A DNA stretch of 64,000 nucleotides, taken from sequence record LC765218.1; one strand, written 5' to 3'. The position numbers and the translations under genes were made by a program. Each line of letters opens with the position of its first letter. Position 1 is the stretch's first letter. Shown here in pieces: positions 1,666 through 60,487 of the stretch. The notes beneath the pieces were generated by a model that searched no databases, had not been told where the DNA came from, and saw only the letters and a program-made list of their open reading frames with translations.

Positions 1666-1939
1666 TTATAACCCACCGGTGGACACTGTTGATGTCCTCC
1701 ATATCGACTGCGAGTACGAAACGTTCTCGTTCGGTAAGTTGTTTCAACGTATGGTCGATCACTTCGGCAGCGATATCAAGCTGGATGATTTCGAAATCGA
1801 AGCAACCAAGATCAAAGTACGTGGTTGCAGCTGTTGTTTGGATCTGGATGACTACACGGATTATATTCGTGTAACTCGTCTTACCCAACCCGCCGCCGAT
1901 ACCGAGACCCTATCGATCGAAGGTCTTATTGTCGGTTGA
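1655..1939 (+). CDS. Hypothetical protein (94 aa, MSSSYNPP...)
   Basis: ATG at 1655 after AAGGAG, overlapping the end of the previous gene; the track's start at 1535 is probably too early. Confidence 0.75.
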   Translation: MSSSYNPPVDTVDVLHIDCEYETFSFGKLFQRMVDHFGSDIKLDDFEIEATKIKVRGCSCCLDLDDYTDYIRVTRLTQPAADTETLSIEGLIVG

Positions 1940-1975
1940 CGGCATAAAGCCCCTACCGGAAGGTAGGGGCTAAAT
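1939..1975 (+). terminator. CATA-arm hairpin element (terminator-like)
   Basis: ACGGCATAAA-GCCCCTACC-GGAA-GGTAGGGGC-TAAAT directly at the stop codon. Confidence 0.8.
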
Positions 1976-2099
1976 CCCATTTCTTTTCGCCAAAGAGTTC
2001 GTCTCGGGCATTGCGCGTTTTGGGCACTAACCCAGCAGTAGGAATAAGAAGTAACGCGTAATCTCCTTACATACTATCAGCCAATAGGTATTATTTCAC

Positions 2100-2654
2100 A
2101 TGGACAAAAAACTGAAAGAATTCCAAACAGTGACTCCGGGTGTAGATCGTTTCGTTTATTACGAGAAAACTGACACCTGGCTCCCCAAAGATACTCGCCC
2201 AATGGACTGTTTCCGCAATAAGAAAGCAATAGAGGCATTCGATAAAGCCAACGAAGAAATTCAAGAACGTTGGTTCTATTGGTGCATCGCATGGGAGAAA
2301 GCTTCTGTTCGCCCTACAATGGAAACCGAACTCTGGAAGAACCCGTTCATCTCTGTTGAAGAACGACTGGAGATTGCAGAAGGCGCCATCGCGTTCCGTA
2401 ACGAGGTCATCAGAAATCTCCAGGGGCGTTTAGTTTCGCCAACGATTACCGAGTTCAAACTTAACGACGAAATGGTGGAAGCTATCTTGGATAGCAGTTA
2501 CACTGTAAAAGATTTCGATCGGAACTCGGAAACGGGCGAAGTAGAGCTTCAGTATCAGATTTCCAATAACTTCCACAATCGCGAGTTGGCACGTGATACT
2601 GTTCACCGTATCATCAATGCCCTCAAACAACTTACCCCGGTGCAACAGCAATGA
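2100..2654 (+). CDS. Hypothetical protein (184 aa)
   Basis: Long ORF with typical codon usage; ATGA overlap with the next gene. Confidence 0.85.
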   Translation: MDKKLKEFQTVTPGVDRFVYYEKTDTWLPKDTRPMDCFRNKKAIEAFDKANEEIQERWFYWCIAWEKASVRPTMETELWKNPFISVEERLEIAEGAIAFRNEVIRNLQGRLVSPTITEFKLNDEMVEAILDSSYTVKDFDRNSETGEVELQYQISNNFHNRELARDTVHRIINALKQLTPVQQQ

Positions 2655-2860
2655 TCTATCTTGGTTGGTTCACCATCATCTTCGTGGTGATGGGTCTTGG
2701 TTTATTCGGTGCTTTCTGTCATCGAATAGTTAATTCCACTAATCCTGGATTGGAAGAGAAGCGTACTACAATGAATACCGCTATCTGGACAGGTATTCTT
2801 CTAGTGCTCGCTTATCTCAATGAAATCAGTCGAGTCTTTATTGTAGGAGTAGTTACATGA
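2651..2860 (+). CDS. Small 2-TM membrane protein (69 aa)
   Basis: Two hydrophobic helices; ATGA overlaps at both ends. Confidence 0.75.
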   Translation: MIYLGWFTIIFVVMGLGLFGAFCHRIVNSTNPGLEEKRTTMNTAIWTGILLVLAYLNEISRVFIVGVVT

Positions 2861-3365: not shown

Positions 3366-3370
3366 TAAAA

Positions 3371-3808
3371 ATGTCGATGTATACCAAAGACAACGCTGAA
3401 CTTTACACCCACAAAGAAGATGGTGGTATTTACTACTACCATGGCTTGGCTCATGGTACCGGTGATCAACGTGGAGAACTGTTGCACATCTACAGTGATT
3501 ACTTCACTGACATGATGTACTACCGTAACCACACCTGGTCTACTCGGATGGAACGCGTTTCTGCTCCAGGGCTTCGTCTGAGTCGTTCCTTGCATCCACG
3601 TCTGTGGATCACCACTCTGATCGGTTTGATGATCATTATCATTACTCAGGTTGTTTTCGGCACCGAGTTCAATGCAATCACTCCCCAAGAGATTGTCGGT
3701 ACAGCCGTCGCTGGTGTACTGGCACTGGGTCTTCCGAGTTTCATCCTGCACCAACTGTACAAGTGGAAGTACAAGAAACCTGTTAAACAGAAGTCCGAAG
3801 CGGCATAA
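3371..3808 (+). CDS. Membrane protein: DUF1653-like N-terminal domain plus 2 C-terminal TM helices
   Basis: YTHKEDGGIYYYHGLAH...YYR pattern resembles DUF1653 (from memory); LWITTLIGLMIIIIT and IVGTAVAGVLALGLP are hydrophobic. Confidence 0.7.
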   Translation: MSMYTKDNAELYTHKEDGGIYYYHGLAHGTGDQRGELLHIYSDYFTDMMYYRNHTWSTRMERVSAPGLRLSRSLHPRLWITTLIGLMIIIITQVVFGTEFNAITPQEIVGTAVAGVLALGLPSFILHQLYKWKYKKPVKQKSEAA

Positions 3809-3846
3809 AAGGAAATCCCCATTGGCCGCTAAACCAATGGGGTTCC
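3800..3846 (+). terminator. CATA-arm hairpin element
   Basis: GCGGCATAAAA-GGAAAT-CCCCATTGG-loop-CCAATGGGG-TTCC overlapping the stop codon. Confidence 0.75.
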
Positions 3847-3849
3847 AAA

Positions 3850-3953
3850 CAGTGCATTCGCGACTACACTGTCAGCAGGTGTCGTCCAAGAGAACTGCGG
3901 ATTAGCTACTTACCCCTCGTGGGCATTTTCGCTAGCAGTATTATAACAACACC
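3850..3953 (+). ncRNA. Candidate structured non-coding RNA
   Basis: Nested complementary segments (CAGTG/CACTG; GGTGT/ACACC; ACTGC/GCAGT; TAGC/GCTA; CCC-TCGT-GGG) in a gap with no convincing ORF, bracketed by two hairpin elements; strand assumed. Confidence 0.3.
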
Positions 3954-3970
3954 GTACGTTCTGAAAAGAT

Positions 3971-4007
3971 TAGCCCTCCTGTGCAACCAGGAGGGCTATA
4001 TGTCGTC
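3971..4007. terminator. TATG-arm hairpin element
   Basis: TAGCCCTCCTG-TGCAAC-CAGGAGGGCTA-TATGTCGTC. Confidence 0.75.
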
Positions 4008-4061
4008 AAGTTTAAGCTTGACTTTTTGCCCAAATGGGCCCACTTGCAGAGGAGACTCCTA

Positions 4062-4328
4062 ATGGAAGTCTTTGAAACAAGTTCCAGACCAGATCCCCAC
4101 CACGGGTACTTGACTGGTCTAGAGGTAACAGCATTCAATGGTAAGCCGATCGTCTATGGGCGAAATGAGCAAATCAAAGTTGCTGTATACGATGGTAAGA
4201 TGTTCCTTGGTTACATTGGCAATGGTCAGCTTGTAAGCAAGCTTTCCGATGCTAAATGGATTAACGGATCATCGAACTATCATATCAAGTCTAACTCCAG
4301 TAATCTTTTGTTTACTAGAGCAGCTTAA
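4062..4328 (+). CDS. Hypothetical protein (88 aa, MEVFETSS...)
   Basis: RBS GAGGAG upstream of ATG 4062, in frame with the track ORF 3981..4328. Confidence 0.7.
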   Translation: MEVFETSSRPDPHHGYLTGLEVTAFNGKPIVYGRNEQIKVAVYDGKMFLGYIGNGQLVSKLSDAKWINGSSNYHIKSNSSNLLFTRAA

Positions 4329-4336
4329 CCTCAATT

Positions 4337-4380
4337 GCCCTCTTCCTTGTGGAGAGGGCTTTACTTAGTTTATTTTTTTT
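4337..4380 (+). terminator. Rho-independent terminator
   Basis: GCCCTCTTCC-TTGT-GGAGAGGGC followed by a T-rich tract. Confidence 0.75.
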
Positions 4381-4710
4381 GTTGATTTAGAAGTTTTACT
4401 TGGGTGTTTAATGAATCTGTAGAACGAGGAAAAGGTACCTCCGGAGGAGGGGGGTTTTATTTAGTAATAAACAATACCGAAGGTATTTCCTTATTCTAAT
4501 TATAAACTTCTTTAATCTTTATTCCTGCTTTTACCCGAAGGGGATCTAACGGAGGCGATGCCCAAACATCGCCATACCAAATGAATTAAGCTTTAAAAAC
4601 AACACAGTCGCCTTGCCTCTCAGGAGCCTCTACACGACATTTCTAATATTAAGTGTCACCATGTTAGGCTTTATCTCTAATATCTCTATAAACGCGTTGT
4701 AGAGCCTTTT

Positions 4711-4744
4711 ACGGCATAAAGCTCCCCGAAGGGAGCAGTATGTT
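4711..4744. terminator. CATA/TATG-arm hairpin element ending the minus-strand dnaB unit
   Basis: ACGGCATAAA-GCTCCC-CGAA-GGGAGC-AGTATGTT. Confidence 0.75.
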
Positions 4745-5144
4745 AGGTCTTACGTTCTTCGAGATAGTTAGTCAACATCGCCTGGCCTTCCTGGCATGGA
4801 TCTGTATCAAAGAAATATTTAGAGTAGTTAGATACATCTACTGATATAAAATCACCATCTGGGCAAGGTGCAGCTTTCTGGAGAATGTCGATATGCAGAT
4901 GATGACTAAAGAACAGAGATGCTCTATACCTCTCTCCTTTCTCCATGATCTCGTTGGCCGACATGGTGAGGAAGTCTACATCCATTCCTTCTAATGCATT
5001 GATAAACAGTTTTGCTATCTCAAAGCGGACCTTATAAAGATTTTGGGATGCCACATGTACCAGAACAGAAGTACCGTGACGTTGTTGTAGATTGAAACGA
5101 AGGTAACCTTTTAGGTTATCGATAAGTGCGTCAATACAACTCAT
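4743..5144 (-). CDS. Hypothetical protein (133 aa)
   Basis: ORF downstream of dnaB on the same strand, flanked by hairpin elements. Confidence 0.75.
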   Translation of the reverse strand: MSCIDALIDNLKGYLRFNLQQRHGTSVLVHVASQNLYKVRFEIAKLFINALEGMDVDFLTMSANEIMEKGERYRASLFFSHHLHIDILQKAAPCPDGDFISVDVSNYSKYFFDTDPCQEGQAMLTNYLEERKT

Positions 5145-5168
5145 GATATTTACTCTTGTGAATTTGTG

Positions 5169-5206
5169 AATAAAGCCTTCCCCGAAGGGAAGGCATTTAT
5201 GTCGTT
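5169..5206. terminator. TATG-arm hairpin element after dnaB
   Basis: AATAAA-GCCTTCCC-CGAA-GGGAAGGC-ATTTATGTCGTT. Confidence 0.75.
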
Positions 5207-6743
5207 AGATAGACCATGCGTCAGAATCGAGATCGCCGCCAATTACAGACCCAGGAACAACTTTCAGAGAATAATCTTCCTCTTTATCAATGTCCCATGG
5301 AATCGTACCGATATTACTAAATGGTAGAAGAACATATTGGTCTTCTTCTGCCGTTACAGTGTTACGGTGTTTACCACGTTGAATAGCGAGATACGCTTTT
5401 CCTTTATGGCGGATGATGTGGTGGAACAGCTCAAGGTCAGGTTCCTGACCCAGACGACGACAACCATCGTAATAACCTTTGTTCGCTACTACCTTAACGA
5501 AGTCCTCGGTATTTTCACGCATCAGTTGCAGTGCATCAGAACCAAGCTGATGAGGGCTGATGAAAGTGATACCACGAGGAGTAGTGTAGTTACGCATGCG
5601 ACGGAATAGAAGACGAATATCGTCACCTGCTACTTTAGCATCAAGTCCTGTCTTAGGTAGCATGTTCAGATAGTCAACTACCAGGAATTGAATCTCGTAT
5701 CCCTGTCCCTGAAGACCATCTAGATAGTTAGTGAAACCACCAATTGTAAATTCAGTGGGGTCGAACCGAACCATCTTAACTTTAAAGCCATTCTCTTCAA
5801 GGCGTGCGCAAACATAAGCAGCAGCTTCACGTTTATCGATATCTTTGACAATGACTTCTTCACCCGTTTCGTTTTCACGGATGTATTTGTAAATAGTCAG
5901 AAGGTTATCAGAGATTTCGTTTTCAAGGGTTGCAAATAGAAGAAGAGGCTTCTTCGATTTATCACGCATCCATGGCTTATTAAACAATGCGACATGTACA
6001 AACAGTAACATAACCAGATACGATTTAAAGTTATGTTGTAGAGCTGCGGTGGTAATAAACTCACCACGACGGAAAGCACCTAGGCTACCCAATACACGGT
6101 TGAAACCTTTCCAACCTAGTTTGAAAGCACCATCGGCAGACAAAGTAGTTTGTACAGCTTCGAAGAATTCTTCTACACCTTCCGGGTTGTCAAAATCAAG
6201 GCAACCCATTTCAGCGGGATGTCGACTTTCAGCACGAGCCTTTACATAAGGATCGAGCTTAGCTCCCATCTCGTTGATCATACCAGCGATATCATTACCG
6301 CCACCACGGTTAAACAGAAGCTTAGTGGAATACTCTTTCATGATCGCTTTAATAGTTTCATCATTGATGTATTCATTAAGCGAACGACGATAAGAGTTAA
6401 TCCGGTGCATGATAGCCATCCCATCTGGGAAGTTTTCATTAACACCATTTAGTACAGCTTCGTAAAGATAGTTCTCTTCACGGCAGCTCACTTGCACAGA
6501 TTGTAGTACTTCAGCGATACTTGGAAATTCGTGCTTAACTTTCTTATTGAGATCTTGAACAAGTTTACGAAGCTCAAGAAAAGTTTGTCGACCATGATCA
6601 TGATCAACAGTAGTCTCTTTAATTTCAAGTGAACCAACAATTTTATCAATTAGTTCAGTAGACGGAGAGGCCGGAGAATCTGGGCGGTGCTCCAAGCAAA
6701 GCAGGGTAACGCAACTGACAAGAAGCTGTTTTGGGGAGGACAT
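5205..6743 (-). CDS. dnaB: Replicative DnaB-like helicase (phiKZ gp118-like)
   Basis: RecA-fold motifs: variant Walker A (TAALQHNFKS), Walker B LVVDYLNML, ISPHQL, IQRGKHR arginine finger; sits upstream of the capsid gene as in phiKZ. Confidence 0.9.
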   Translation of the reverse strand: MSSPKQLLVSCVTLLCLEHRPDSPASPSTELIDKIVGSLEIKETTVDHDHGRQTFLELRKLVQDLNKKVKHEFPSIAEVLQSVQVSCREENYLYEAVLNGVNENFPDGMAIMHRINSYRRSLNEYINDETIKAIMKEYSTKLLFNRGGGNDIAGMINEMGAKLDPYVKARAESRHPAEMGCLDFDNPEGVEEFFEAVQTTLSADGAFKLGWKGFNRVLGSLGAFRRGEFITTAALQHNFKSYLVMLLFVHVALFNKPWMRDKSKKPLLLFATLENEISDNLLTIYKYIRENETGEEVIVKDIDKREAAAYVCARLEENGFKVKMVRFDPTEFTIGGFTNYLDGLQGQGYEIQFLVVDYLNMLPKTGLDAKVAGDDIRLLFRRMRNYTTPRGITFISPHQLGSDALQLMRENTEDFVKVVANKGYYDGCRRLGQEPDLELFHHIIRHKGKAYLAIQRGKHRNTVTAEEDQYVLLPFSNIGTIPWDIDKEEDYSLKVVPGSVIGGDLDSDAWSI

Positions 6744-9798: not shown

Positions 9799-9822
9799 AG
9801 CGGAAGTGTTAAGCTGACTGCT

Positions 9823-9864
9823 GGCATAACAGCCTCTACCTTCGGGTAGAGGCTTTATGTCGTC
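9823..9864. terminator. CATA/TATG-arm hairpin terminating the capsid transcript
   Basis: GGCATAAC-AGCCTCTACC-TTCG-GGTAGAGGCT-TTATGTCGTC. Confidence 0.85.
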
Positions 9865-9884
9865 ATTAAAAAATATTTCAAATC

Positions 9885-9892
9885 TATATTAC
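9885..9892 (+). promoter_or_regulatory. Putative early (virion RNAP) promoter TATATTAC
   Basis: Exact phiKZ early motif with an AT-rich upstream tract (AAAAAATATTTCAAATC), heading the unit that contains the nvRNAP subunit. Confidence 0.65.
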
Positions 9893-15131: not shown

Positions 15132-15162
15132 ACATAAGTGTCCCTCTTCGGAGGGACCTTTT
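15132..15162 (+). terminator. CATA-arm hairpin element
   Basis: ACATAAGT-GTCCCTC-TTCG-GAGGGAC-CTTTT. Confidence 0.8.
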
Positions 15163-15176
15163 CATAGGAAAATGAG

Positions 15177-15587
15177 ATGTTATCATTTGAAAATGGAGTA
15201 GGCGTAGAATTCATTGCTTTAGATCGACTTCCAAAATACATGCATGTGAATTATGAAGTCAGTAAGTTTAGCAATGATATTCGTTCCGGCGTGATCGCTT
15301 GTGAGTTTGGTCATCCTAAGATGACAGGTAACATTGAAACAGACTACAAACGAGCAACATCCATCAACTGCAATAATGGTGCAGCTTTAGTACTCGGTAT
15401 CGACCCTGTACATGAGAAAGCTAAACTCATTGGCTTCAACGTATACATCCGTCCATTCGGGCCCAATCATGATCGGATGCATGCGATGATCAAGAACGAT
15501 ATTCCAATGCGACTTGGTGTACGCGGCCTCAAGAATGCGGCTGGTGTATTGAAAGAAATTATCACATTCGACATATTGTCAGATTGA
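15177..15587 (+). CDS. Prohead-protease-fold paralogue 1, catalytic Ser absent
   Basis: CEFGHP...R..SI....IRPFGP...LGVRGL mirrors the GELNHP...GP...GVSSRG motifs of T4 gp21/phiKZ gp175-type proteases, with Gly at the Ser position. Confidence 0.6.
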   Translation: MLSFENGVGVEFIALDRLPKYMHVNYEVSKFSNDIRSGVIACEFGHPKMTGNIETDYKRATSINCNNGAALVLGIDPVHEKAKLIGFNVYIRPFGPNHDRMHAMIKNDIPMRLGVRGLKNAAGVLKEIITFDILSD

Positions 15588-15591
15588 TAAC

Positions 15592-15620
15592 TAGCCCCTC
15601 ATTAGAGGGGCTATATGTCC
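15592..15620. terminator. TATG-arm hairpin element
   Basis: TAGCCCCTC-ATTA-GAGGGGCTA-TATGTCC. Confidence 0.75.
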
Positions 15621-15636
15621 CTCTAGGAGCAGAGTA

Positions 15637-16176: not shown

Positions 16177-16229
16177 CGCCTATATCACAGAGGTGATATA
16201 AATACACTCTATCAAAAGGAAATTGCAAA

Positions 16230-16934: not shown

Positions 16935-17207
16935 ATGTCTGTCTTCGGTTATGTATTGACGTGGACTCAGGAATTTCACATGTGGTTCCTGATAGCTGTT
17001 CTCGCTGCTTTCTTTGCTCTTTATCTAAATCATCGGTTTAGGTATCTCATCTACGTGCCATTTGAAAAGATTGGCAAACGTGATTTCATTAAGATGTCCC
17101 TTACTTCAATTACAATGCTGTTGTGTATTGTCGTTGTATTTGGGGCTACTCTACGAATGATCGAGATGAAAGAGATCGATAGAGTATGGTCGATTGAACG
17201 GCGATGA
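16935..17207 (+). CDS. 2-TM membrane protein (90 aa)
   Basis: MWFLIAVLAAFFALYL and ITMLLCIVVVFGATL helices; abuts the previous stop. Confidence 0.75.
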   Translation: MSVFGYVLTWTQEFHMWFLIAVLAAFFALYLNHRFRYLIYVPFEKIGKRDFIKMSLTSITMLLCIVVVFGATLRMIEMKEIDRVWSIERR

Positions 17208-17210
17208 GTA

Positions 17211-17260
17211 ACAACATAAAGCCCTCTCCTTCGGGAGAGGGCGATATGCTTTATTTTTTT
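17211..17260. terminator. Bidirectional CATA/TATG-arm hairpin between convergent units
   Basis: ACAACATAAA-GCCCTCTCC-TTCG-GGAGAGGGC-GATATGC followed by a T-tract. Confidence 0.85.
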
Positions 17261-23479: not shown

Positions 23480-23518
23480 CGACATAAAGCCCGGCTCAAG
23501 GCCGGGCAATATGTTGCC
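23479..23518. terminator. Bidirectional CATA/TATG-arm hairpin between convergent genes
   Basis: ACGACATAAA-GCCCGGC-TCAA-GGCCGGGC-AATATGTTGCC. Confidence 0.8.
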
Positions 23519-35960: not shown

Positions 35961-35970
35961 CAATAATATT

Positions 35971-36000: not shown

Positions 36001-36050
36001 ATGCTATGTGGGTTAAGTAAATTTTGTAAACCACAATTGAGGGTTTAACA

Positions 36051-38532: not shown

Positions 38533-38572
38533 ATAAAATAGTCGCAACTCCAGATAGATGCTCTCCTGAAAA

Positions 38573-38610
38573 GGCATACTGGAGTCCCCTTTGGGACTCC
38601 TATATGTTGC
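38573..38610. terminator. CATA/TATG-arm hairpin element
   Basis: GGCATACT-GGAGTCCC-CTTT-GGGACTCC-TATATGTTGC. Confidence 0.75.
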
Positions 38611-38699
38611 TAAAATAATACACTACTCTATGAGTCTTATTTTCCTTTTAAGACGTGCACGAGTAGTTGCGAAGACTCTCTCCAACAAAGGAATACGTA

Positions 38700-44491: not shown

Positions 44492-44497
44492 TAATAG

Positions 44498-44538
44498 CGG
44501 CATAAAGCCCAGGGTTAACCCTGGGCTTTTATGTCGTC
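44498..44538. terminator. Bidirectional CATA/TATG-arm hairpin; the minus-strand stop codon lies in the loop
   Basis: CGGCATAAA-GCCCAGGG-TTAA-CCCTGGGC-TTTTATGTCGTC. Confidence 0.85.
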
Positions 44539-45276
44539 TTTATCAACTTCGATACCGTTATCTCCAGGACGAATCATGGAGAAATATTTAGCATCTATAA
44601 ATTCAAAGTCCATGTGAATCAGCCGCTCGACCCTGAACTTAAATAGTTCAAACTTCTTCTCCTCGATAGTGAGTTTACTAACGTCACGTTCGAAGAGTTT
44701 AGGTCCAATAAAATTGAAGCATGGCATTTGAACTTTAGACAAAGCAAGATAATGAGTGTGCATCCATTCATGGAAATCGTAAGTGATATACATCGCATAG
44801 AGAGCATCCAAGAATTTAGGTGTGAGCTCTTCTAATGGATGACTAACTACTTCCACGGGCATTTCTTCGCCGTATATTTCTTGGATGATATTTTCAAGGT
44901 CATCGATAACTTCACCAGGTAACGTGTAAGGCCAGATGTTGATCGTAAGACCAATCTCGTCTTCAGGATTACCCATGTTATCCATTCTGTTTACATGATC
45001 TTCCGCGAGAATTCGCATCAAGAACGGACTGATACCTGTTAGGATAGAAGCGTTGATAGTATCAGCGGAATTATCTCCGCCTCTATTAGCATACGCTTCT
45101 TTGAATTGCTCCGTTGTAACAAGACCACCTGTTAGAGTGGTCCAGTCATCATTTTCACGAAGCCAATATTCCTTAGTGGAAACCAACCGTTCTGCTGCCT
45201 CCTTGTTAATTGTAGACATGACTCCAAGACGGGTGTCAAGTAATACATCAAGAGGTATCAGAATACGTTTGATCAT
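44515..45276 (-). CDS. Hypothetical protein (253 aa; HAD-like N-terminal signature)
   Basis: RILIPLDVLLDTRLG N-terminus; in the conserved operon with the vRNAP fragment. Confidence 0.8.
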   Translation of the reverse strand: MIKRILIPLDVLLDTRLGVMSTINKEAAERLVSTKEYWLRENDDWTTLTGGLVTTEQFKEAYANRGGDNSADTINASILTGISPFLMRILAEDHVNRMDNMGNPEDEIGLTINIWPYTLPGEVIDDLENIIQEIYGEEMPVEVVSHPLEELTPKFLDALYAMYITYDFHEWMHTHYLALSKVQMPCFNFIGPKLFERDVSKLTIEEKKFELFKFRVERLIHMDFEFIDAKYFSMIRPGDNGIEVDKDDIKAQG

Positions 45277-47152: not shown

Positions 47153-47168
47153 TGGAATACCTACTTGA

Positions 47169-47197
47169 CATAGAGGGAGCTAATGCTCCCGTCTATG
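47169..47197. terminator. CATA/TATG-arm hairpin element
   Basis: CATAGA-GGGAGC-TAAT-GCTCCC-GTCTATG. Confidence 0.7.
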
Positions 47198-47200
47198 ATA

Positions 47201-47593
47201 TTAATCACAACAACTGCTATCGCTACTTGAACCACTATCGGTAGTATCGCTAGAAAGGGCCACAGCAGCTCCTACAGCGAAGATTGTGTTGGACAGGTCC
47301 ATATCCTCGGCTCCTCTACCAGAAGCGTAACCACGGCCTTCTGGGATCCTTAAAGGTTGAACCTGTTTTGATTCGTTTGCTCTATAGCGCTCGTACCATT
47401 CTTTTGCTGGGTCAGATAAAGTGGATCTATATTTTTCACTGCCCATTTCAACGGCTTCGCGTGCCAAAGAGATCTGTTCGCATTTACCCAAATCCCCGCG
47501 CTCGGCAGGGATAGGTTCAACGATCACAACTCCTTCTTTAGGCAGCTTTCGCTTTGGCCAGATCCAACGGAATAATCTTAGCACGTTCATCAT
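47201..47593 (-). CDS. Hypothetical protein with Ser/Asp-rich tail (130 aa)
   Basis: Overlaps the 3' end of uvsX by 56 nt; ends SSDTTDSGSSSDSSCCD. Confidence 0.6.
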   Translation of the reverse strand: MMNVLRLFRWIWPKRKLPKEGVVIVEPIPAERGDLGKCEQISLAREAVEMGSEKYRSTLSDPAKEWYERYRANESKQVQPLRIPEGRGYASGRGAEDMDLSNTIFAVGAAVALSSDTTDSGSSSDSSCCD

Positions 47594-48977
47594 CAGTCAT
47601 CCAGTAAGGTTTATAGTCACCGGTACGCATACGAAGAAGATCGTAGGTCGAAAGGAATTTCTTATCGGTGAGAGCTTCGTCTTCTTCACACATCCAATAG
47701 CCACGAGTCGTATTCAGGATCATATCCCAATCATAACCCATCGCTTTCAGATCTTCGTACAGTGTCTTTGGATCACATACATCTTCAGCCGTCCAACGCT
47801 GGAACTGGATCAACTGAAGCATCTCAGATTGAATTTCAACAGCCCGACGAAGGGATTCGTTTTCCATAAGCTTCTTACGTACAGTGGTACGACTAAGCTT
47901 GATATCTGGGCAAAGTTCAATGTAGTAGTTCAGAAGGTTACCACCAATACCCCAACCATTTTCTTTGCAGTAATGGAACTCAGTGAGCGAAGGAAGTACA
48001 CCTTCAGTCTGAGAAACTACGATATGGAAAGGAAGGCCAGTAATACCACCTTTACCACGAAGGTTCATTACCTCCAGAATCTTAAGATCGGTATCCCCTT
48101 CCATTGCGGTCGAGTTATCGATCGGATACAGAGGCATCTTCTCTTTGTTAACAAGAGGTTTGTTAGACTCGATAGAGAATACGTTGTTAGGCAGCGAATA
48201 GAAGCCAGAACTAACGCCTTTAAGAACCGTATCCTTCTTCATGTGGGAAAGATTACGTTTATCAGTCGGGTACATCTCCATTTGGATGATGTCACCAGTG
48301 TGCGCAGTCAGTACGATATAAGTACCGGTCTTAGCACATACCTGAGGCAATTGGTTGAACAGCTGGTTCTTAGCCTTACCATTAGTCATGGCATCGGTGT
48401 TGTTACCAGATGCACCGATAGCATTCTTCTCGTACATATCCGATACGGCAGTAACGATAAACTTCGAGAAACTATCGATCAGGCCAGTTGTCGGGTACAT
48501 GCATTTCTTGTTGTTACCTTCAACATCAAGGAACGGAGTAGTGCGCTGATATTCTTTTTCTGCTTTCTCTTTCTCACCAAGTGCTGTACGGAAGAGTTTA
48601 AAGAACTCATCGCCGGTATATCGAGAAAGGTCAGTGAACATGAATTGTTCATCATGTTCCCAATCGATCTTTTGCAGATCACTGAATTGAGCTGCAAGAC
48701 TACTGAAACGTGCAACCGGGTTCAAGGTACCCTCGGTATCATAGATCATGCCATGGGAACCCGGCATAGCTCGACGAACCATCGCTAGCATATACACAGC
48801 GAGTGCAGTTTTAAAGTTGTTAGGTCGAGATGCGATACCGGTCATCGGACCGAGACCACCGTTACAGATCATCTCGCCGTGTTTACCTTGTTCATATTTA
48901 CCAGTGGATACATCCATCAGGCAGCCGATATTAACCGCCGGGCGGAAGGCCGGACGTTGGAAGTGTTTAGCGAACAT
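47538..48977 (-). CDS. uvsX: RecA/UvsX-like recombinase (phiKZ gp152-like)
   Basis: Variant Walker A GIASRPNNFKT, IYDTEGT, GLIDSFSK (Walker B), VLTAHTG; no intein visible. Confidence 0.9.
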   Translation of the reverse strand: MFAKHFQRPAFRPAVNIGCLMDVSTGKYEQGKHGEMICNGGLGPMTGIASRPNNFKTALAVYMLAMVRRAMPGSHGMIYDTEGTLNPVARFSSLAAQFSDLQKIDWEHDEQFMFTDLSRYTGDEFFKLFRTALGEKEKAEKEYQRTTPFLDVEGNNKKCMYPTTGLIDSFSKFIVTAVSDMYEKNAIGASGNNTDAMTNGKAKNQLFNQLPQVCAKTGTYIVLTAHTGDIIQMEMYPTDKRNLSHMKKDTVLKGVSSGFYSLPNNVFSIESNKPLVNKEKMPLYPIDNSTAMEGDTDLKILEVMNLRGKGGITGLPFHIVVSQTEGVLPSLTEFHYCKENGWGIGGNLLNYYIELCPDIKLSRTTVRKKLMENESLRRAVEIQSEMLQLIQFQRWTAEDVCDPKTLYEDLKAMGYDWDMILNTTRGYWMCEEDEALTDKKFLSTYDLLRMRTGDYKPYWMTDDERAKIIPLDLAKAKAA

Positions 48978-49075: not shown

Positions 49076-50044
49076 ATGATTAAAAATGTTCTTAATAAAT
49101 ACACTGAGAAGGTCTCCAATGAAAACGTCCAGACTGATGACGTTATCTTTGATAGTTCTCAGAATAAGTTCTTCACTGAGGGTGATCCTCAAGCAGCAGA
49201 GCAAACCCCTGAAACAGAAGTTCTTCCTGTAGATCAAACTCCTACAGACAAACTATTCGATGCTCTGGGTACAATTTCCACTGAAGCTGGTTTCATTGGT
49301 AATGTTTCTAATTGGTTTGCCCGTAAAGTATCCAATATGGGAGTTCATATTAAAGACGGTTTCCGTTATCTGACTACGTGGAACTATGATCCGCTTCTAC
49401 CTCTTAATCCTCTATCCATGAAAGGCTTTGTGGCTACTCTGGATTATTTCGAAGTTGAGAAAGAGATTGTTCCGCAACCAGCTGGCTTTAAAGGCGAAAT
49501 GCTTCCATATACCGCTGGTCTGGTATCGCGTGCACAGGTAATGGCGCAAGTAGTAGAGAAGGTTATTCGACCCGCGACATCTCGTTTTGGTCATTATCTG
49601 ACTACTCCAGAAGATCGTGCAGAACGTCGAGACTTCCAATACGGTATCGATATTGATAAATCGATTGACCAGCTTATTAAAGAAGACGCTCAGTTCTTTG
49701 CTAATAACCGCCAGTCAACTGTTGCATTTGGTAAGATTTACAGTTCGATGAATGACTTCTATGAATCTGAACAACATATGTTCGAGATTAATACCATTCT
49801 TAAAGGTGGTGAAACCTCTACCGTTAAAAGTGCAGTAGAAGCATTAAGTCAAACCGTAACTGCTTTGATGGAACGGATCGGTAAAGAAGGCGATATCAAA
49901 ACATCCAGCGAGTTCGCTAAGATGATGTCTGAGGAACTAACCCAAGTAGCTAAGTGGGTAGAGTGGTTCTCCATTCAAATGACACGAATTATTGAAACCA
50001 ATAATGTCTTAGCTGAAACAGAGAAACATCTTCGTTCTCTGTAA
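49076..50044 (+). CDS. Head protein with cleaved propeptide (phiKZ gp153-like)
   Basis: ATG 49076 after AGGA; acidic N-terminus with S-N-E and S-T-E sites; synteny. Confidence 0.75.
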   Translation: MIKNVLNKYTEKVSNENVQTDDVIFDSSQNKFFTEGDPQAAEQTPETEVLPVDQTPTDKLFDALGTISTEAGFIGNVSNWFARKVSNMGVHIKDGFRYLTTWNYDPLLPLNPLSMKGFVATLDYFEVEKEIVPQPAGFKGEMLPYTAGLVSRAQVMAQVVEKVIRPATSRFGHYLTTPEDRAERRDFQYGIDIDKSIDQLIKEDAQFFANNRQSTVAFGKIYSSMNDFYESEQHMFEINTILKGGETSTVKSAVEALSQTVTALMERIGKEGDIKTSSEFAKMMSEELTQVAKWVEWFSIQMTRIIETNNVLAETEKHLRSL

Positions 50045-50085
50045 GACAACATATTGCCCCACCTAATGGTGGGGCTTTATGCCGT
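50045..50085. terminator. Bidirectional CATA/TATG-arm hairpin
   Basis: GACAACATATT-GCCCCACC-TAAT-GGTGGGGC-TTTATGCCGT. Confidence 0.85.
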
Positions 50086-50495
50086 TAAGCTGTCGCCTGA
50101 CGTTCCTTCATGCAATGGTGTACTAATTGCTTAAGTTCTTTAACGAAAGTTTCCTTGTCTGTATATAGAAGCCAGCAGGGAGTCTTTCGAGCGATCCTTT
50201 CGAAGTACTTGTCAGATTCAAGATCAACCTTCTCGATAGGGAGGATACCTTTCCAAACGTAAGGTCCAAATAACGTTGGTAAGCGTAAGGCGCTTTCATC
50301 CCTCACGAGACGCATCACTGAATTAAGCGAAGATATCCGCTCGCATTCGTGATCGCGACACTGCACCAGTGCGGCATGCAATGACGCCATTACGCACATC
50401 CGTTTGAAGCCGTTATCCAGGTGATTCCAGATGAAAACCCAGAATGTCCTGAATGGATTTTCATCCAGCCTCAAGAATCTGCTAATAAGGCTCAT
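50085..50495 (-). CDS. Hypothetical protein (136 aa)
   Basis: Downstream of RNase H in the same operon. Confidence 0.75.
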   Translation of the reverse strand: MSLISRFLRLDENPFRTFWVFIWNHLDNGFKRMCVMASLHAALVQCRDHECERISSLNSVMRLVRDESALRLPTLFGPYVWKGILPIEKVDLESDKYFERIARKTPCWLLYTDKETFVKELKQLVHHCMKERQATA

Positions 50496-52907: not shown

Positions 52908-54215
52908 ATGTACAATTTGAAAGGCTTTTACAGCTTCCCTGCACTCATTTCGAATGCACCTGAAACTGTAGCGAAGCTCGGCGAACTTTCGTCGAACAGC
53001 GCAACCTATGCAAAGGACAAGACTTTCCACACCGGTACGTCCGCACCAAACGTTGTTTTTATTTCTTTTCATAGCGTAAAGGATGGAAACGTTGTTGATG
53101 TTGCTGGTAACAACAAAGATCAAGTTCTTAAGCTAGGTGAATATATTTATCAACAGTCGATTTCTGGTACGATCGGTTCCGATCCTAACGTACTTCGTCA
53201 ACTGGTGATGGCAGAGTTTAATGGGGTTATCCAAAGTTTCCGTAGTGGTCAAATGATTTCTAACGGTAGCATTTGGATGCCAGAATGGGTTGAATTCGTA
53301 TTAGTTGGTTCTGAAGCTAACCAGATGAATATCTGGCTTGCAGATGAATCCTTTGCAGCTCAGTACGATGAATACATCATCGAGATCGTACATCCGATAA
53401 TTCCGTATGACGATTTCTTTAAAGATCCGCTTATTGTTAAGCAGCTACTGGACGATTATGATCTCGTTGAGAAGATCGAAGAAGTTCAGGCTAAGCGGGC
53501 ACAATATCCATATACACATCAACGGGCATTCATGTTTGAATACCATAATCCCCGTGATGATTCTATGCGTTTCCCCGCCTATTGGATTGCAATCGTCTAT
53601 GGCGAGGCTGGCAACAACCCTGACCTCATCAAAGACAAGATTGTAGAAGAACTACTGGCTGACTCTGCACATCCACGGACAGATTGGGAAGTTATTCTTC
53701 CAGACCTGTTCATGACAACTGAGTTCATCTTTACTCCATTCTGGAACCAGTATTCTATCGAACAAGCCGATTATCGAGCTGGTACCTACAGTCCTACTGT
53801 AGACCATCGTAAACGACTTCCTTTGATTCGTCGAACAGCACGTGGGCCAGGTTATACTCAAACCTACGTAGACAATAAATTCGAGCTGTCTTCGAACACA
53901 TACAAATCCATTGCCTTCTCCGTATTGGGTAACCCTCAAAACAGGAATGGTATTACACAGTTCTCGCAGAAATTTAAAGATTATCAGTTAGTAACTAACG
54001 ATACTGGGGATATCAATAAATCGTCGCCTGAAACAATTGAATGGATGATGTTGTTCTCGAAGCTACTGAAAGCAGCCGAAGGGATGACTCGCTATAGCTC
54101 TGTTCCACAAGGGGTGTCTCGCATGATTCGTGATAATGTGATTTATGCAAGCGCATACTTTAAGAACGTTAACTACATGGTTGTAGCTAAAGCTAGCGTA
54201 GAAGAATTATCCTAA
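52908..54215 (+). CDS. Virion structural protein (phiKZ gp157-like)
   Basis: 435 aa; N-terminal LKGF...N....A.LGELS motif recalled from this family; synteny. Confidence 0.7.
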   Translation: MYNLKGFYSFPALISNAPETVAKLGELSSNSATYAKDKTFHTGTSAPNVVFISFHSVKDGNVVDVAGNNKDQVLKLGEYIYQQSISGTIGSDPNVLRQLVMAEFNGVIQSFRSGQMISNGSIWMPEWVEFVLVGSEANQMNIWLADESFAAQYDEYIIEIVHPIIPYDDFFKDPLIVKQLLDDYDLVEKIEEVQAKRAQYPYTHQRAFMFEYHNPRDDSMRFPAYWIAIVYGEAGNNPDLIKDKIVEELLADSAHPRTDWEVILPDLFMTTEFIFTPFWNQYSIEQADYRAGTYSPTVDHRKRLPLIRRTARGPGYTQTYVDNKFELSSNTYKSIAFSVLGNPQNRNGITQFSQKFKDYQLVTNDTGDINKSSPETIEWMMLFSKLLKAAEGMTRYSSVPQGVSRMIRDNVIYASAYFKNVNYMVVAKASVEELS

Positions 54216-54216
54216 A

Positions 54217-54250
54217 AACATAAGGGAGAGGGGAAACCCTCTCCTTTTAT
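54217..54250 (+). terminator. CATA-arm hairpin element
   Basis: AACATAA-GGGAGAGGG-GAAA-CCCTCTCC-TTTTAT. Confidence 0.8.
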
Positions 54251-54262
54251 TAGGGGATACAC

Positions 54263-56729: not shown

Positions 56730-56733
56730 GAAT

Positions 56734-56760
56734 GTGGCTCGGTTAACCGAGCCACTCTTT
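56734..56760 (+). terminator. Hairpin terminator
   Basis: GTGGCTCGG-TTAA-CCGAGCCAC followed by TCTTT. Confidence 0.75.
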
Positions 56761-56805
56761 ACTTTCATTACCAATTACATGACAATTCAATAGTGAGTAT
56801 GATAC

Positions 56806-57435: not shown

Positions 57436-57488
57436 CAACCTTATGTAGTTTAAACTCACGAAATCCCCCGCAATTGTGGAGTATATAA

Positions 57489-59249
57489 ATGGCCCGCGCT
57501 AACCTTTTCGATCTGTGCCGTAGCATCTCTAACGAATCCATTACTGAAGAAGTAGAGAACAAAGCTGCTGGTACTGTCACTGAAGCCTCCGATCAGAACG
57601 TGGATCTGGAAGGCAAGAAAGATCTCGAACCTCAACTGAAGAGTGATGAGGGCGAAAAGCCTGATGCTGATGATGTTGATGCTTCGGTCACTAACACACA
57701 GACTAGTGAACCAGGTCCCACTGAAGGTGGTGGCGATGGTACTGCCGAAACTGTAGATGTGACCAATGTTCATACTTCGGACACCGTTGAGAATCACGTA
57801 ACCGCCGTTGACCAAACTGGTCTTGGGGATGTTGGTTCTGCACATGACGAAGTATCGGCTGACGATGATAACGTCGCTACCACTACTTCTGTAGAAGAAC
57901 ACACTGATGGTCTCGATACCATCGAATCTGGTGAAACTGAATCCGTTGGCGAAGCTGACGACATGGTGCAGGACATCGATGAAGCTGTTGAAGCTCTTAC
58001 TGCCGATGGCCTTACATCCGCTACTGATGCCAAAGGTGCCGTTGTAAACGAGATTGCTTCGGATATGGGCGACATTGAAAACGCCAAAGCTTCCGTTGAG
58101 CGTTATCTTGGTATCCTGCGTGGCATGCGTGAAAACGGCTATGAAGTTACTAACGAGCTGGCTGAGTCGATGCGTGTCGGTCTGGAAATGATTGATCCTG
58201 ATTTCTTCTCTGATACCGTGGTATCCGTTGAAGAACTTGACGACAGCGATAAGCATACTTCTGCTCGTGATGCTACTGAAAGCAAACTCACTGCTAAGAT
58301 GAAGTCTTTGCTGGAAGCAGCCCGTAATGTTCTGATGCGTATCTTCAACGCATTGATGGACTTCTGGCGCTCCTTTACTCAAGATGCTACCAAACTGAAA
58401 GAACGTCTGCGTACTCTTCGTAGTAAAGTAGGTACTCTTGATGGTGGTAAGCAGATTAAGATTGGTGGTCTGCAACGTCTGTCCATTGGTAAAGAATTCG
58501 TTGGCGATAGTCCTGAAGCTATTAAGCGTGTTGAGAATACCGCTGATATCGTTCTCATCAACTGGCCGAGCAAACTTGCTGAAATTCTGAAGAAGTTTGA
58601 TGATAAATCTACTTACTACTTCGGCGTTCAAAGCGGTCTCGCTCCTGAAATGCTCGATGCGATCGATGACATTCTGTCTAACTCCTTCCGTGGATTCAAG
58701 AACGTTAATTCCAACGAGAAAGATAAAGTTCCGAGTGGTATGTTGAATAGCACCTCGGTTCATATGTCCGAAGTTCTTCCGGGTAACCGTGCAATGTTCG
58801 TTGGTGTGAACACCGATTACGCAGCCGATAAGACTTTCAACTTCAACAACGCTATTAATATCAACTTCTCGGTTATTCCGGGTGGCGATAGCTATGGTGG
58901 TGCCGATACCATCAAAACGATGTCTGCTGGTGAAGCAGTTTCTGTTATTCGCGCTACCGAGCAACTGATCAATAAAGTTGAAGCAGCTGTTGAAGGTCGT
59001 AGCAAGCTGAATGAACTCGCCCAACGGGTTAACCAGAAAGGATCTAGCTTCCTGTTTGGTGCACTGATGACCGGTGATGAGAACTCGGCTATTTCCAGTC
59101 TGCTTGCCATTACTCTGGCTCGTCAAACTGCTAATGCTAACCATCTGTTTACAGGTTATTGCCTGAACCTGGTTAAAGCTGAAATCGCTGTTATTGAAGC
59201 CATGCTGAAAGCTGAACATGGTGATGTTATCGAAGGCGAGAAAGCCTAA
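57489..59249 (+). CDS. Inner-head/ejection protein with acidic propeptide (phiKZ gp162-like)
   Basis: Very acidic N-terminal region of about 260 aa with SNE, SVE and GLE sites; SEVLPGN motif; TATG at 57442. Confidence 0.8.
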   Translation: MARANLFDLCRSISNESITEEVENKAAGTVTEASDQNVDLEGKKDLEPQLKSDEGEKPDADDVDASVTNTQTSEPGPTEGGGDGTAETVDVTNVHTSDTVENHVTAVDQTGLGDVGSAHDEVSADDDNVATTTSVEEHTDGLDTIESGETESVGEADDMVQDIDEAVEALTADGLTSATDAKGAVVNEIASDMGDIENAKASVERYLGILRGMRENGYEVTNELAESMRVGLEMIDPDFFSDTVVSVEELDDSDKHTSARDATESKLTAKMKSLLEAARNVLMRIFNALMDFWRSFTQDATKLKERLRTLRSKVGTLDGGKQIKIGGLQRLSIGKEFVGDSPEAIKRVENTADIVLINWPSKLAEILKKFDDKSTYYFGVQSGLAPEMLDAIDDILSNSFRGFKNVNSNEKDKVPSGMLNSTSVHMSEVLPGNRAMFVGVNTDYAADKTFNFNNAININFSVIPGGDSYGGADTIKTMSAGEAVSVIRATEQLINKVEAAVEGRSKLNELAQRVNQKGSSFLFGALMTGDENSAISSLLAITLARQTANANHLFTGYCLNLVKAEIAVIEAMLKAEHGDVIEGEKA

Positions 59250-59259
59250 GGGTGAAAGC

Positions 59260-60444
59260 ATGTCCTATCTGGCACAATGGAATGAAGTATCTGAAGACCT
59301 GAGTAAGATTCAGCGTCTTGGTTCTTCTCTAGAGCGCTACCGCGATCTGCTAGCTGGACGTGACGTTGTAACAGGGGCTACTGCTGATGTTATCTCGGTA
59401 GCCCTTGAGAGTATTGACCCTGACTTTGATATCAAAGAAGGTTCTAAAATTACTCTGAGAGCAATCAAAGAAGGCATTATCGCGGCGGCGAAAGCCACCC
59501 GCGATATTGTCCGCTACATCTGGGAATTGCTTAACTCTTTCTACGTCAAATTCACCGGTAGCATTCGTCGTGTTCGTCGCACACAAGAAAGCATTAGTCG
59601 ACGCTTAGGTAAACTAGGCTCGGCAACTACTTACCAGAAAATGTCTGTAGCTGGTGTACAACGTCTATCTATTGATGGTAACTTCGTGGGGTTAGACCTT
59701 AACCACTTGAACGACATCAAAGATCTAACCAACTACATTCTCAACCATTATCCTAAATCGGTTGCAAAGATTGCACGGAACAGTTCTCGACAGTTCCTGA
59801 ATATCTTGGATAAATCTAAGGATGCTAGCTCTAATGAAGTAGCTGGTGAGGTTGTAGAAGCATTTGCAAATATCCTCCAACGTGATTTTACCCCTCCGCC
59901 TGGTCATGCCCCTCTCCAACAGAGAGAACTGACTACTGCGGAAAAAGGTGTCCATCGTTCGGTTGTCCTACCTGGCAACGTAGCGTTCATCTATACACCA
60001 CCTGACGTTATCAGTCAGATGTTGAATAATAGTAAAGTCGCTAATGAGGATGTTGTAAGACGTTCGTTTACAATGCAGTTCGCTGAGCTACAGCTAAATG
60101 TAGCTGACCGTTCTGAACGTGAGATTGATGTACCTTCTGTCCGTACTCTTAGTGAGATCACTCAGTTGATCTCCAGCATCCTTTCTCTAGCAGAGAAAGC
60201 TGAAACGGGTCAGCGGGACTTCTCCACGGTCAAAGTAGTTGTAGACGACGCTATTCGACAGATCGCTGAAGCGGGTGAAGAGGCAGGTAAATCCTATAAT
60301 TCTGTTCTCTCTATTATCGGCGAGATTTCGAAGAAGTTAGCTGAACCAATGGGTTTCTATACTCACTGGCTGGCTGTATCGCTTAATGTGTATTTGACTT
60401 TCATTAGTCATTGCATCAAGCATTACGAAGCTGAAGGCGTATAA
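59260..60444 (+). CDS. Inner-head protein paralogue (phiKZ gp163-like)
   Basis: SLE/ALE sites; GVQRLSIDGNFVG and SVVLPGN match the upstream paralogue (GLQRLSIGKEFVG, SEVLPGN). Confidence 0.8.
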   Translation: MSYLAQWNEVSEDLSKIQRLGSSLERYRDLLAGRDVVTGATADVISVALESIDPDFDIKEGSKITLRAIKEGIIAAAKATRDIVRYIWELLNSFYVKFTGSIRRVRRTQESISRRLGKLGSATTYQKMSVAGVQRLSIDGNFVGLDLNHLNDIKDLTNYILNHYPKSVAKIARNSSRQFLNILDKSKDASSNEVAGEVVEAFANILQRDFTPPPGHAPLQQRELTTAEKGVHRSVVLPGNVAFIYTPPDVISQMLNNSKVANEDVVRRSFTMQFAELQLNVADRSEREIDVPSVRTLSEITQLISSILSLAEKAETGQRDFSTVKVVVDDAIRQIAEAGEEAGKSYNSVLSIIGEISKKLAEPMGFYTHWLAVSLNVYLTFISHCIKHYEAEGV

Positions 60445-60487
60445 CGGCATAAAGCCCCTACCGAATGGTAGGGGCTTTATGTTGTCA
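60444..60487. terminator. Bidirectional CATA/TATG-arm hairpin
   Basis: ACGGCATAAA-GCCCCTACC-GAAT-GGTAGGGGC-TTTATGTTGTC; left arm and stem identical to the element at 1939. Confidence 0.85.

Follow-up and report, generated by a model that had tools for sequence, protein, structure and literature searches.

Hairpins at the gene ends of phage BRkr

The stretch of DNA analysed here (the window, 64,000 nt) corresponds to positions 1-64000 of Pseudomonas phage BRkr (LC765218.1, 306 kb), to which its sequence is identical, and carries between its genes a family of GC-rich hairpins with conserved outer arms, CATA on the upstream side and TATG on the downstream side. The window shows 99.5-99.7% identity to PA1C, phiHQ, HHBS36_1, PS119XW and phiLBG22, and 82% to HPP-Temi; PS119XW is the type species of Pawinskivirus, a genus placed in Chimalliviridae (taxonomy dump), which bears out the assignment to the chimalliviruses made in a preliminary description of this DNA. 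The UvsX-like protein encoded at 47538-48977 on the minus strand is 81% identical to phiKZ gp152, indicating that BRkr is a sister lineage of phiKZ. Nearly all the genes of the BRkr record are labelled 'hypothetical protein'. The hairpins are, with high probability, intrinsic-type transcription terminators of the phiKZ/201phi2-1 class, in which the upstream arm is a copy, on the opposite strand, of the tail that follows the hairpin. This class of element has already been published for both phages, and BRkr is an unstudied member of it.

Hairpins were defined by a perfect stem of at least 6 bp including at least 5 G:C pairs, and a loop of 3-8 nt. The window contains 24 of them, compared to 3.5 ± 1.6 (maximum 7) in 30 dinucleotide-preserving shuffles; a generic terminator scan of the first 20 kb gave 38 sites versus 16.1 ± 4.9, and the RNA folding z-scores of the window elements range from −2.4 to −8.9. 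All 17 coordinates listed in the preliminary description carry a perfect or near-perfect GC stem-loop, and the loop of usually 4 nt that it gave holds for 17 of the 24 window hairpins (76 of the 104 intergenic hairpins genome-wide); the hairpin family is therefore real, and has three further members in the window (4337-4359, 35971-35994 and 56734-56755). The perfect-stem definition misses imperfect members, several of which sit among the TATG sites considered below as 'free', that is, not adjacent to a hairpin. There was no Rfam 15 match at the gathering threshold in the window.

The genome-wide census covers 300 of the 306 kb of BRkr, with genes called by a codon-usage score; these calls match the BRkr record except for a few small genes, and underlie all the junction statistics given here. 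There are 125 hairpins in the 300 kb, 104 of them within the non-coding 8% of the sequence, and a hairpin is present at 18 of 22 convergent, 77 of 311 co-directional and 1 of 22 divergent junctions, the lone divergent case (1949) hinging on a gene call that differs from the BRkr record. The initial claim that 'most gene junctions' carry a hairpin was an overestimate, the actual values being 18 of 63 junctions in the window (17 of the 31 gaps of at least 30 nt) and 96 of 355 genome-wide. The distance from the stop codon to the core stem is 6-12 nt in roughly 55 of the 84 co-directional cases. The hairpins are also polar with respect to transcription: of the sense-oriented co-directional hairpins, 36 have a UUCG loop and none a CGAA loop (6 and 3, respectively, at convergent junctions), and C outnumbers G in the 5' arm of 51 of the 84 sense-oriented stems, G outnumbering C in 25. 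The stems had been described as variable, and they are indeed replaced, but not freely, since they belong to a C-rich 5'/G-rich 3' repertoire of which several recur. The placement at gene ends, the spacing from the stop codon and the polarity of the loops together indicate RNA hairpins acting at transcript ends.

Where the stem starts 6-12 nt past the stop codon (15131/15140, 33270/33280, 54215/54225, 60444/60448), a ribosome at the stop codon would cover its 5' arm, a situation that would be tolerable if the phage nucleus separates transcription from translation.

Stem, arms and tail of the element

The sense 3' flank of the 84 co-directional hairpins of BRkr has the logo T T T A T K Y Y (K, G or T; Y, C or T), the sixth position being G in 33 and T in 30. 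The TATG arm initially described stands as a conserved tail, but its G is not universal, the form being TTTAT-K as in phiKZ. When the sense flanks are aligned on TATG, the distance from the last G:C pair to the G is exactly 6 nt in 32 of 36, and the next four positions are Y (35/36), Y (35/36), G (21/36) and T (20/36); for this last G and T, the corresponding values at convergent junctions are 23/33 and 28/33. The 5' flank is far less informative (A at −3 in 62/84, otherwise A-rich, with CATA frequent), so that the CATA arm initially described is a frequent feature but, in co-directional junctions, a much weaker one than the downstream arm. When the tail was scored as TTATGYYGT at no fewer than 8 of 9 positions and within 16 nt of the stem, it was found on the sense side of 30 of 84 co-directional hairpins (36%) and on the antisense side of 13 of 84 (15%), on the two sides of the 19 convergent hairpins in 7/19 and 13/19, and in only 0.7% of background intergenic windows; at 7/9 or better, it was present on both sides of 14 of the 19 convergent hairpins. 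The uninterrupted U-tract of approximately 7-8 nt that characterises classical terminators was not found: the consensus is UUUAU followed by G/U, Y, Y, an interrupted tract, in agreement with the preliminary description, which had called the short U-tract atypical of plain intrinsic terminators.

The tail is not of the same type throughout the genome. TATG-type tails account for 8 of the 31 terminator sides inside record positions 108-178 kb and for 54 of the 91 outside (with TATG-YY predominant in the structural regions), and the longer T-runs are mainly in that block. The block (record 108000-178000) consists of about 140 small same-strand genes, with loops that are mostly UUCG and plain T-rich tails, which may be a polymerase- or class-specific flavour of terminator. 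The most enriched 8-9-mer upstream of genes is an AT-rich, early-promoter-like motif (...TTTAAA...CTATATTAC), with copies in the window at 9884-9892 (plus strand) and, with one mismatch, at 16180-16188 (plus strand), and some 20 genome-wide (record positions 64556, 66470, 71505, 108644, 116638 and 142374, for example); it often lies 20-43 nt 3' of a terminator hairpin, and a TATG-type tail is present in 9 of the 13 hairpins directly before it. No significant difference was found between the hairpins ending early units, with a CTATATTAC promoter, and the others in the frequency of TATG-type tails (6/19 versus 56/103; Fisher p = 0.08; two of the 'other' calls are stem-trimming artefacts).

Stem and arms behave differently in sequence comparisons. 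A MAFFT alignment of 53 elements of mixed stem length yielded no structure with RNAalifold, because the stems were out of register; a covariance model was seeded instead on 22 BRkr elements that all have the same length, the structure annotation being limited to the core stem, and searched against BRkr and ten chimallivirus loci (720 kb), covariation being scored on the 150 best matches. This model recovers 12 of the 17 sites listed earlier at E ≤ 0.01. In the core stem 99.3% of the cells are paired, compensatory double changes occur in all eight pairs (279 cells), and the covariation score is 0.716 compared to 0.147 after shuffling, a value reached by none of 500 shuffles. The ten arm positions, scored as if they formed a helix, gave a very different picture: 71.7% of the cells pair, compared to 73.7% when the partners are shuffled among sequences, and the covariation score is 0.134 versus 0.160, with 498 of 500 shuffles at least as high. 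A separate permutation of the arms in the BRkr set gave 348 paired cells compared to 341.9 ± 13.5; on the sense strand of the same set there is no excess of G.U pairs over A-C oppositions (73 versus 89). In the 150 matches, at the only variable arm positions, where RR (R, A or G) stands opposite YY, G:C is rarer than under independence (9 observed, about 16 expected) and A-C is common. Since the arms do not covary, their complementarity reflects one consensus present on each strand and not selection for pairing. The upstream CATA arm is thus the same linear tail motif on the opposite strand, not an extension of the helix, and the CATA...TATG arms do not form the single paired unit initially described.

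The variable arm positions are in fact anti-correlated, with A-C or G.U oppositions above and G:C below expectation (RR and YY, alignment columns 5-6 and 63-64; in the element at 60444-60487, for example, CGG stands opposite TTG), which looks as if perfect long palindromes were avoided; an SbcC-like subunit of a palindrome-specific nuclease is encoded at 61629-64121.

The ten loci of relatives are centred on the UvsX-like gene and measure about 41-48 kb each. A hairpin followed by TTATGYYGT(T) was found in HPP-Temi, phiKZ, Phabio, RVTF4, the Ralstonia phage FLC1-1B and the Erwinia phage Simmy50, and once in OBP; the UvsX proteins of FLC1-1B and Simmy50 are only about 40% identical to that of BRkr. 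At the convergent junctions of these relatives, the reverse complement of the motif also precedes the hairpin. The scan with a covariance model that the preliminary description had proposed thus revealed flanked hairpins in seven of the ten loci (sites at E ≤ 0.01: HPP-Temi 7, phiKZ 6, Phabio 6, RVTF4 5-6, FLC1-1B 3, Simmy50 1, OBP 1), and none at that threshold in the loci of Vibrio phage Yong XC32, Salmonella phage SPFM4 and phage EL, whose hairpins have ordinary T-rich or unrelated tails. Orthologous junctions keep the arms while the stems are replaced: from BRkr to OBP, eight different stems stand between the same arms at the junction by the UvsX-like gene (window 50056), and these arms are kept in HPP-Temi, phiKZ, Phabio, RVTF4, Simmy50 and OBP, and the phiKZ junctions orthologous to window 33280, 35972, 38581, 44507, 50056 and 60448 all have hairpins with the same flanks. 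A lack of arm conservation in relatives would have spoken against the signal family initially proposed; the arms are conserved, and the conserved-arm hairpins are a genuine, selected family whose flanks are kept while the stems change.

Individual elements of the window

The elements at convergent junctions are the most complete (values out of nine are matches to TTATGYYGT). The fullest copy, at 60440-60489, contains a 15-bp perfect stem (60448-60481, −33.3 kcal/mol) that includes CATAAAG and CTTTATG, and has orthologues with other stems in HPP-Temi, phiKZ, Phabio and RVTF4. The element at 50042-50089 (hairpin 50056-50075), beside the UvsX-like gene, scores 9/9 and 8/9 on its two sides, and that at 44493-44541 (hairpin 44504-44529) 9/9 on the plus and 8/9 on the minus strand, with different stems at the orthologous sites of phiKZ, Phabio and RVTF4. 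Three others score 9/9 on the minus and 7/9 on the plus strand: the bidirectional element at 4709-4750 (hairpin 4721-4736), and those at 17207-17256 (hairpin 17221-17242) and 23475-23521 (hairpin 23489-23507), the last having a different loop in its HPP-Temi orthologue. Other elements with motifs on both sides are 38567-38614 (hairpin 38581-38600; 7/9 on each), whose HPP-Temi and phiKZ orthologues have changed loops and stems, and 54211-54258 (hairpin 54225-54244, GAAA loop), with the plus tail TTTTATTAGG, a variant in which K is T, and 8/9 on the minus side.

On the plus strand, terminator-like elements were found at 3971-4006 (hairpin 3971-3998, 11 bp with a 6-nt loop, followed by TATATGTCGT), 9820-9867 (hairpin 9832-9853 with a UUCG loop, followed by TTTATGTCGT, 9/9, and then by the early-promoter motif at 9884-9892) and 15582-15625 (hairpin 15592-15613, followed by TATATGTCC). 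Tails without TATG are present at 4337-4369, where an imperfect GC hairpin (4337-4359) with a TTTACTT tail follows the gene at 4062-4328; at 56734-56766, where the hairpin 56734-56755 has a plain TCTTTACTTTC tail, no CATA, and an orthologue in HPP-Temi; and on the plus side of 15132-15170 (CTTTTCATAGG), whose hairpin (15140-15157, UUCG loop) starts 9 nt past the stop codon and scores 7/9 on the minus side. At 35960-36010, the plus-strand hairpin 35971-35994 is followed by TTTTATAATGCTATGT; the stem is replaced in relatives, while this flank (35995-36010) is conserved in BRkr, HPP-Temi, phiKZ and Phabio, representing four genera, and resembles the phiKZ late promoter P119L. Judging from this resemblance, a terminator and, downstream of it, a true late promoter probably adjoin at this site, TTTTATAATGCTATGT being the likely promoter of the virion-protein gene at 36051.

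The remaining elements are one-sided or weak. At 1939-1982 (core 1949-1970, GGAA loop; a match of the covariance model), the motif is complete (9/9) on the minus strand only: the 'upstream arm' at 1939-1947, which abuts the annotated stop codon, is the reverse complement of this minus-strand motif, and the plus flank lacks it. The annotation is in conflict here, the BRkr record having a gene at 1655-1939 on the plus strand and codon usage slightly favouring 1628-1888 on the minus strand. The weak member at 3800-3842 (hairpin 3817-3842, 9 bp with an 8-nt loop; 5-6/9) has its CATA arm 7 nt further out than usual. Two elements lie between minus-strand genes: 5163-5209 (hairpin 5175-5194), with 9/9 on the plus, antisense side and a TTTATT-type tail on the minus, sense side, and 47161-47202 (hairpin 47175-47190, minus strand), with CATAGA...TCTATG arms and a weak motif (6/9). 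The element at 33266-33307 (hairpin 33280-33295) lies between two plus-strand genes and has the full motif only on the minus, antisense strand, an arrangement kept in HPP-Temi (locus L008, ~15268) and phiKZ (locus L009, ~34251; the gp138/gp139 junction); by its orientation, it would imply that an antisense transcript is conserved and ends within the long structural operon of the plus strand. A second annotation conflict concerns the adjacent region: a minus-strand gene is annotated in HPP-Temi (L008 14744-15265; window 32782-33270), while BRkr and phiKZ annotate the orthologous region on the strand of its neighbours.

Two long intergenic gaps, 3808-4062 and 4328-4743, have no annotated gene and contain hairpins of mixed orientation (3817 and 3971 in the former; 4337, 4437, 4554 and 4721 in the latter). 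They are candidates for small RNAs, like those reported in phiKZ.

Transcription termination and the alternative readings

In phiKZ, 61 predicted intrinsic terminator regions share the motif 5'-BCCYCCCCHWWDGGGRRGGBYTTATKYYGT-3', obtained by ONT-cappable-seq (Oxford Nanopore Technologies cappable sequencing; Putzeys et al. 2024, PMC10914365); the same study reports six regions of bidirectional termination, located between convergent genes, and a share of 9% of terminators antisense to genes. For 201phi2-1, the mapping gave 132 termination sites and, among them, motif A (n = 59), which 'strongly resembles' that of phiKZ, and motif B (n = 26), found together with A in 21 terminators and drawn there as an elongation of the hairpin, which the authors tied to antitermination resistance (PMC11512511). 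Eight 201phi2-1 terminators were tested in a reporter in uninfected P. chlororaphis; terminators of this phage were validated in the terminator trap, where related elements stop host transcription in vivo (PMC11512511). The formation of RNA 3' ends at the BRkr elements is inferred from their homology with these two systems. Termination, one of the functions initially suggested, is thus supported by the position of the hairpins, their strand polarity and the identity of the motif with that mapped in phiKZ and 201phi2-1.

The initial description had also linked the TATG arm to the late promoter of the non-virion RNA polymerase (nvRNAP). Initiation by the phiKZ nvRNAP needs TATG, with G as +1, and the positions downstream are reported as unconserved; in a structure from 2026, the beta-like subunit GP123 binds the four TATG bases in the single-stranded non-template strand. 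The native context of the late promoter P119L, taken from the published oligonucleotides, is ...GCTATG-TAGAC..., with no hairpin, and the BRkr intergenic TATG sites that face a gene away from hairpins mostly continue with TA, TG or A (position 6834 reads TATGTAGAC). P119L and the BRkr tail share TATG on the non-template strand, but differ in what follows (TAGAC versus YYGT) and in placement. A hairpin-adjacent TATG acting as an nvRNAP late promoter, either in a terminator-promoter module or as a site of re-initiation after release, would fit the G being located where the active site of a terminating polymerase would be, the median of about 50 nt between co-directional hairpins and the next start codon, and the hairpin at 35971-36010 followed by a conserved P119L-like sequence. 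The motif is nevertheless most complete at convergent junctions, where initiation would yield only antisense RNA; the context is YY-G-T, with neither G nor A at the Y positions in 35 of 36 cases, compared to TA, TG or A at free sites and P119L; late promoters reportedly have no conserved positions 3' of TATG; and the sixth flank position is T nearly as often as G (30 versus 33 of 84). A promoter function of the arms is accordingly improbable. The link comes down to a shared 4-mer, in neither the placement nor the context of a promoter, and we conclude that the shared TATG is not evidence that the arms are promoters.

The arms could alternatively pair in the RNA, giving a long-stem terminator of 19-20 bp, for instance one resistant to antitermination as proposed for the A + B combination of 201phi2-1. 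The two arm consensuses are reverse complements, single-sequence folds pair them in many copies (60440-60489 reaches −33.3 kcal/mol), and an elongated A/B hairpin is described for 201phi2-1 (PMC11512511); the arms are, however, devoid of covariation and pair no better than arms swapped among elements, A-C oppositions are more frequent than G.U pairs and G:C falls below expectation at the RR/YY positions, and many elements have one arm only, all of which makes this explanation rather unlikely. Somewhat less doubtful, though still improbable, is that the flank acts after transcription, as the binding site of a phage or host protein or as the cleavage site of a nuclease, the 3' ends being formed by processing instead of termination; 3'-end processing, protection from exonucleases and the marking of mRNAs for exit from the phage nucleus are the roles considered. 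That the flank is conserved in phages of different hosts suggests that its reader is encoded by the phage, and chimalliviruses must export mRNA from the nucleus and encode RNA-binding proteins. Against this, the only published eCLIP (enhanced crosslinking and immunoprecipitation) of a chimallivirus nuclear RNA-binding protein, ChmC, revealed no motif and an enrichment close to start codons, not at 3' ends; an RNA ending in or just after the U-tract would leave most of the conserved tail (YYGT) outside the mature molecule, in keeping with a signal that is read as transcription proceeds; and 201phi2-1 terminators of this kind function in uninfected Pseudomonas in the terminator trap (PMC11512511). 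The involvement in mRNA export or RNA-protein binding initially suggested thus found no pointer in its favour. A role at the DNA level, as palindromic sites for a dimeric protein or as mobile repeats similar to REP (repetitive extragenic palindromic) or MITE (miniature inverted-repeat transposable element) sequences, would account for the dyad symmetry, the many copies and the stems recurring at several loci. It is the least probable explanation of all, as the half-site spacing depends on stem and loop length, each arm being at a constant distance from the base of its own stem, loop polarity relative to transcription is strong, compensatory stem changes occur at orthologous junctions, divergent junctions are nearly free of elements, and Rfam gave zero matches. 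The elements were also considered as REP/MITE-like repeats in their own right and rejected, since the stems differ and covary, the placement follows gene ends and strand, and the orthologous positions are kept.

Sense-strand TATG is avoided within the genes of BRkr (1189 occurrences compared to 1668 ± 32 with codons shuffled within genes, z = −14.9). The ratio is 0.71 for TATG and 0.80 for CATA, while AATG, CATG and GATG are enriched, and the deficit lies mostly at T-ending codons followed by ATG. Avoidance was found in all eleven chimallivirus loci (0.53-0.85), but not in phages 14-1 (0.91) or T4 (0.96), and is most simply explained by TATG being a polymerase signal throughout the family. Across this panel it did not co-occur with TATG-type terminators, SPFM4 having the strongest avoidance and zero such terminators.

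Under the terminator reading that we favour, a GC hairpin, usually C-rich in its 5' arm and with a loop of 4 nt that is often UUCG, would form in the RNA 6-12 nt past the stop codon; a short, interrupted U-tract and the tail would come next, at a fixed distance from the stem (stem-TTTATG-YY-G-T), and the upstream arm (ACRRCATAAA) would constitute the tail motif of the opposite strand. A two-armed element would then stop transcription in both directions, as would be the rule at convergent junctions, and a one-armed element in one direction only. The non-U positions A4, G6, Y7, Y8, G9 and T10 would constitute a pause/release signal for the multisubunit RNA polymerases of the phage, offsetting the short U-tract. 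The elemental pause consensus of multisubunit RNA polymerases is G-10 Y-1 G+1; release 8 nt past the stem would place G at −10 (26/36), Y at −1 (35/36) and G at +1 (21/36; 23/33 at convergent junctions). The tail keeps a fixed register with the stem, lies mostly beyond the point where release is likely, and is conserved in phages of different hosts; these features suggest that the phage polymerases read it as a signal while transcribing, and a polymerase pause or termination signal is our leading guess for what the tail may do. A capture of TATG by the GP123 pocket is rated lower than the pause, as it would put the 3' end 5 nt from the stem, seemingly too early for the hairpin. That the tail is a stop or pause signal specific to chimallivirus polymerases, read in register with the hairpin in the DNA or in the nascent RNA, is a tentative proposal, less likely to be right than wrong.

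Several observations weigh against the terminator reading. A search for transcriptomes of this phage group found none, and the sole RNA run located for BRkr and its near-identical relatives yielded one contig of 244 nt that has no end at a hairpin; the U-tract is shorter than is usual in classical intrinsic terminators; and approximately 15% of the co-directional hairpins have the full motif on the antisense side, alone or in addition to the sense side (33280, for example, which is kept in three genera). By their orientation such motifs would require antisense transcription; antisense RNAs and antisense terminators have been reported for phiKZ (PMC10914365). The pause role of the tail is itself a working guess.

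For a specialist the hairpins themselves are unsurprising, because the phenomenon has already been described for phiKZ and 201phi2-1. The elements provide a ready map of transcription-unit ends for a 306-kb phage that is a therapeutic candidate and whose genes are nearly all 'hypothetical'. More useful is the comparative result, a 10-nt tail kept from Pseudomonas to Ralstonia and Erwinia chimalliviruses while the stems turn over and the arms remain independent, which turns a published logo into a testable question, namely how two non-canonical RNA polymerases terminate without host factors. If the tail signal proposed here is real, it would act as an elemental pause, or through the late-promoter TATG pocket of the beta-like subunit, so that one polymerase surface would serve for both start and stop; a single pocket would explain the family-wide avoidance of sense-strand TATG in genes, and the phage polymerases, working in the phage nucleus, would stop without help from the host factors NusA, NusG and Rho.

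The BRkr elements match the phiKZ motif position for position, and share with it a C-rich/G-rich stem of 7-9 bp, a 4-nt loop, the YTTATKYYGT tail, the intergenic location and the bidirectional arrangement between convergent genes. They differ in having mostly one T more (G 6 nt from the stem, compared to 5 in many of the phiKZ copies of the 41-kb sample), and in being known from their sequence, while the phiKZ terminators were mapped by RNA sequencing. The phiKZ publication treats the motif as one RNA-level unit, with no analysis of the upstream arm. In 201phi2-1, motif B occupies the position of this arm, and its combination with A was read by the authors as a longer stem, whereas BRkr and six relatives show no covariation of the arms; this favours two independent copies of one motif over a long A + B stem, and corrects the long-stem reading of the combination. 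What is new here is the contrast in covariation between stem and arms, the persistence of the flank across genera, and the context of TATG, unlike that of late promoters. In common with classical Rho-independent terminators, the elements have a GC hairpin, a U-rich 3' tail, an A-rich 5' side and a placement after stop codons or between convergent genes; unlike these, the U-tract is interrupted (UUUAU), the later non-U positions are conserved across genera that infect different hosts, and the BRkr hairpins start only 6-12 nt past the stop codon. The elemental pause, the NusG-dependent TTNTTT pauses of Bacillus and the class II terminators of T7 RNA polymerase also have a short conserved sequence at or after the release point, which acts with or without a hairpin in those systems, and this analogy provides a functional lead for the tail of the BRkr elements.

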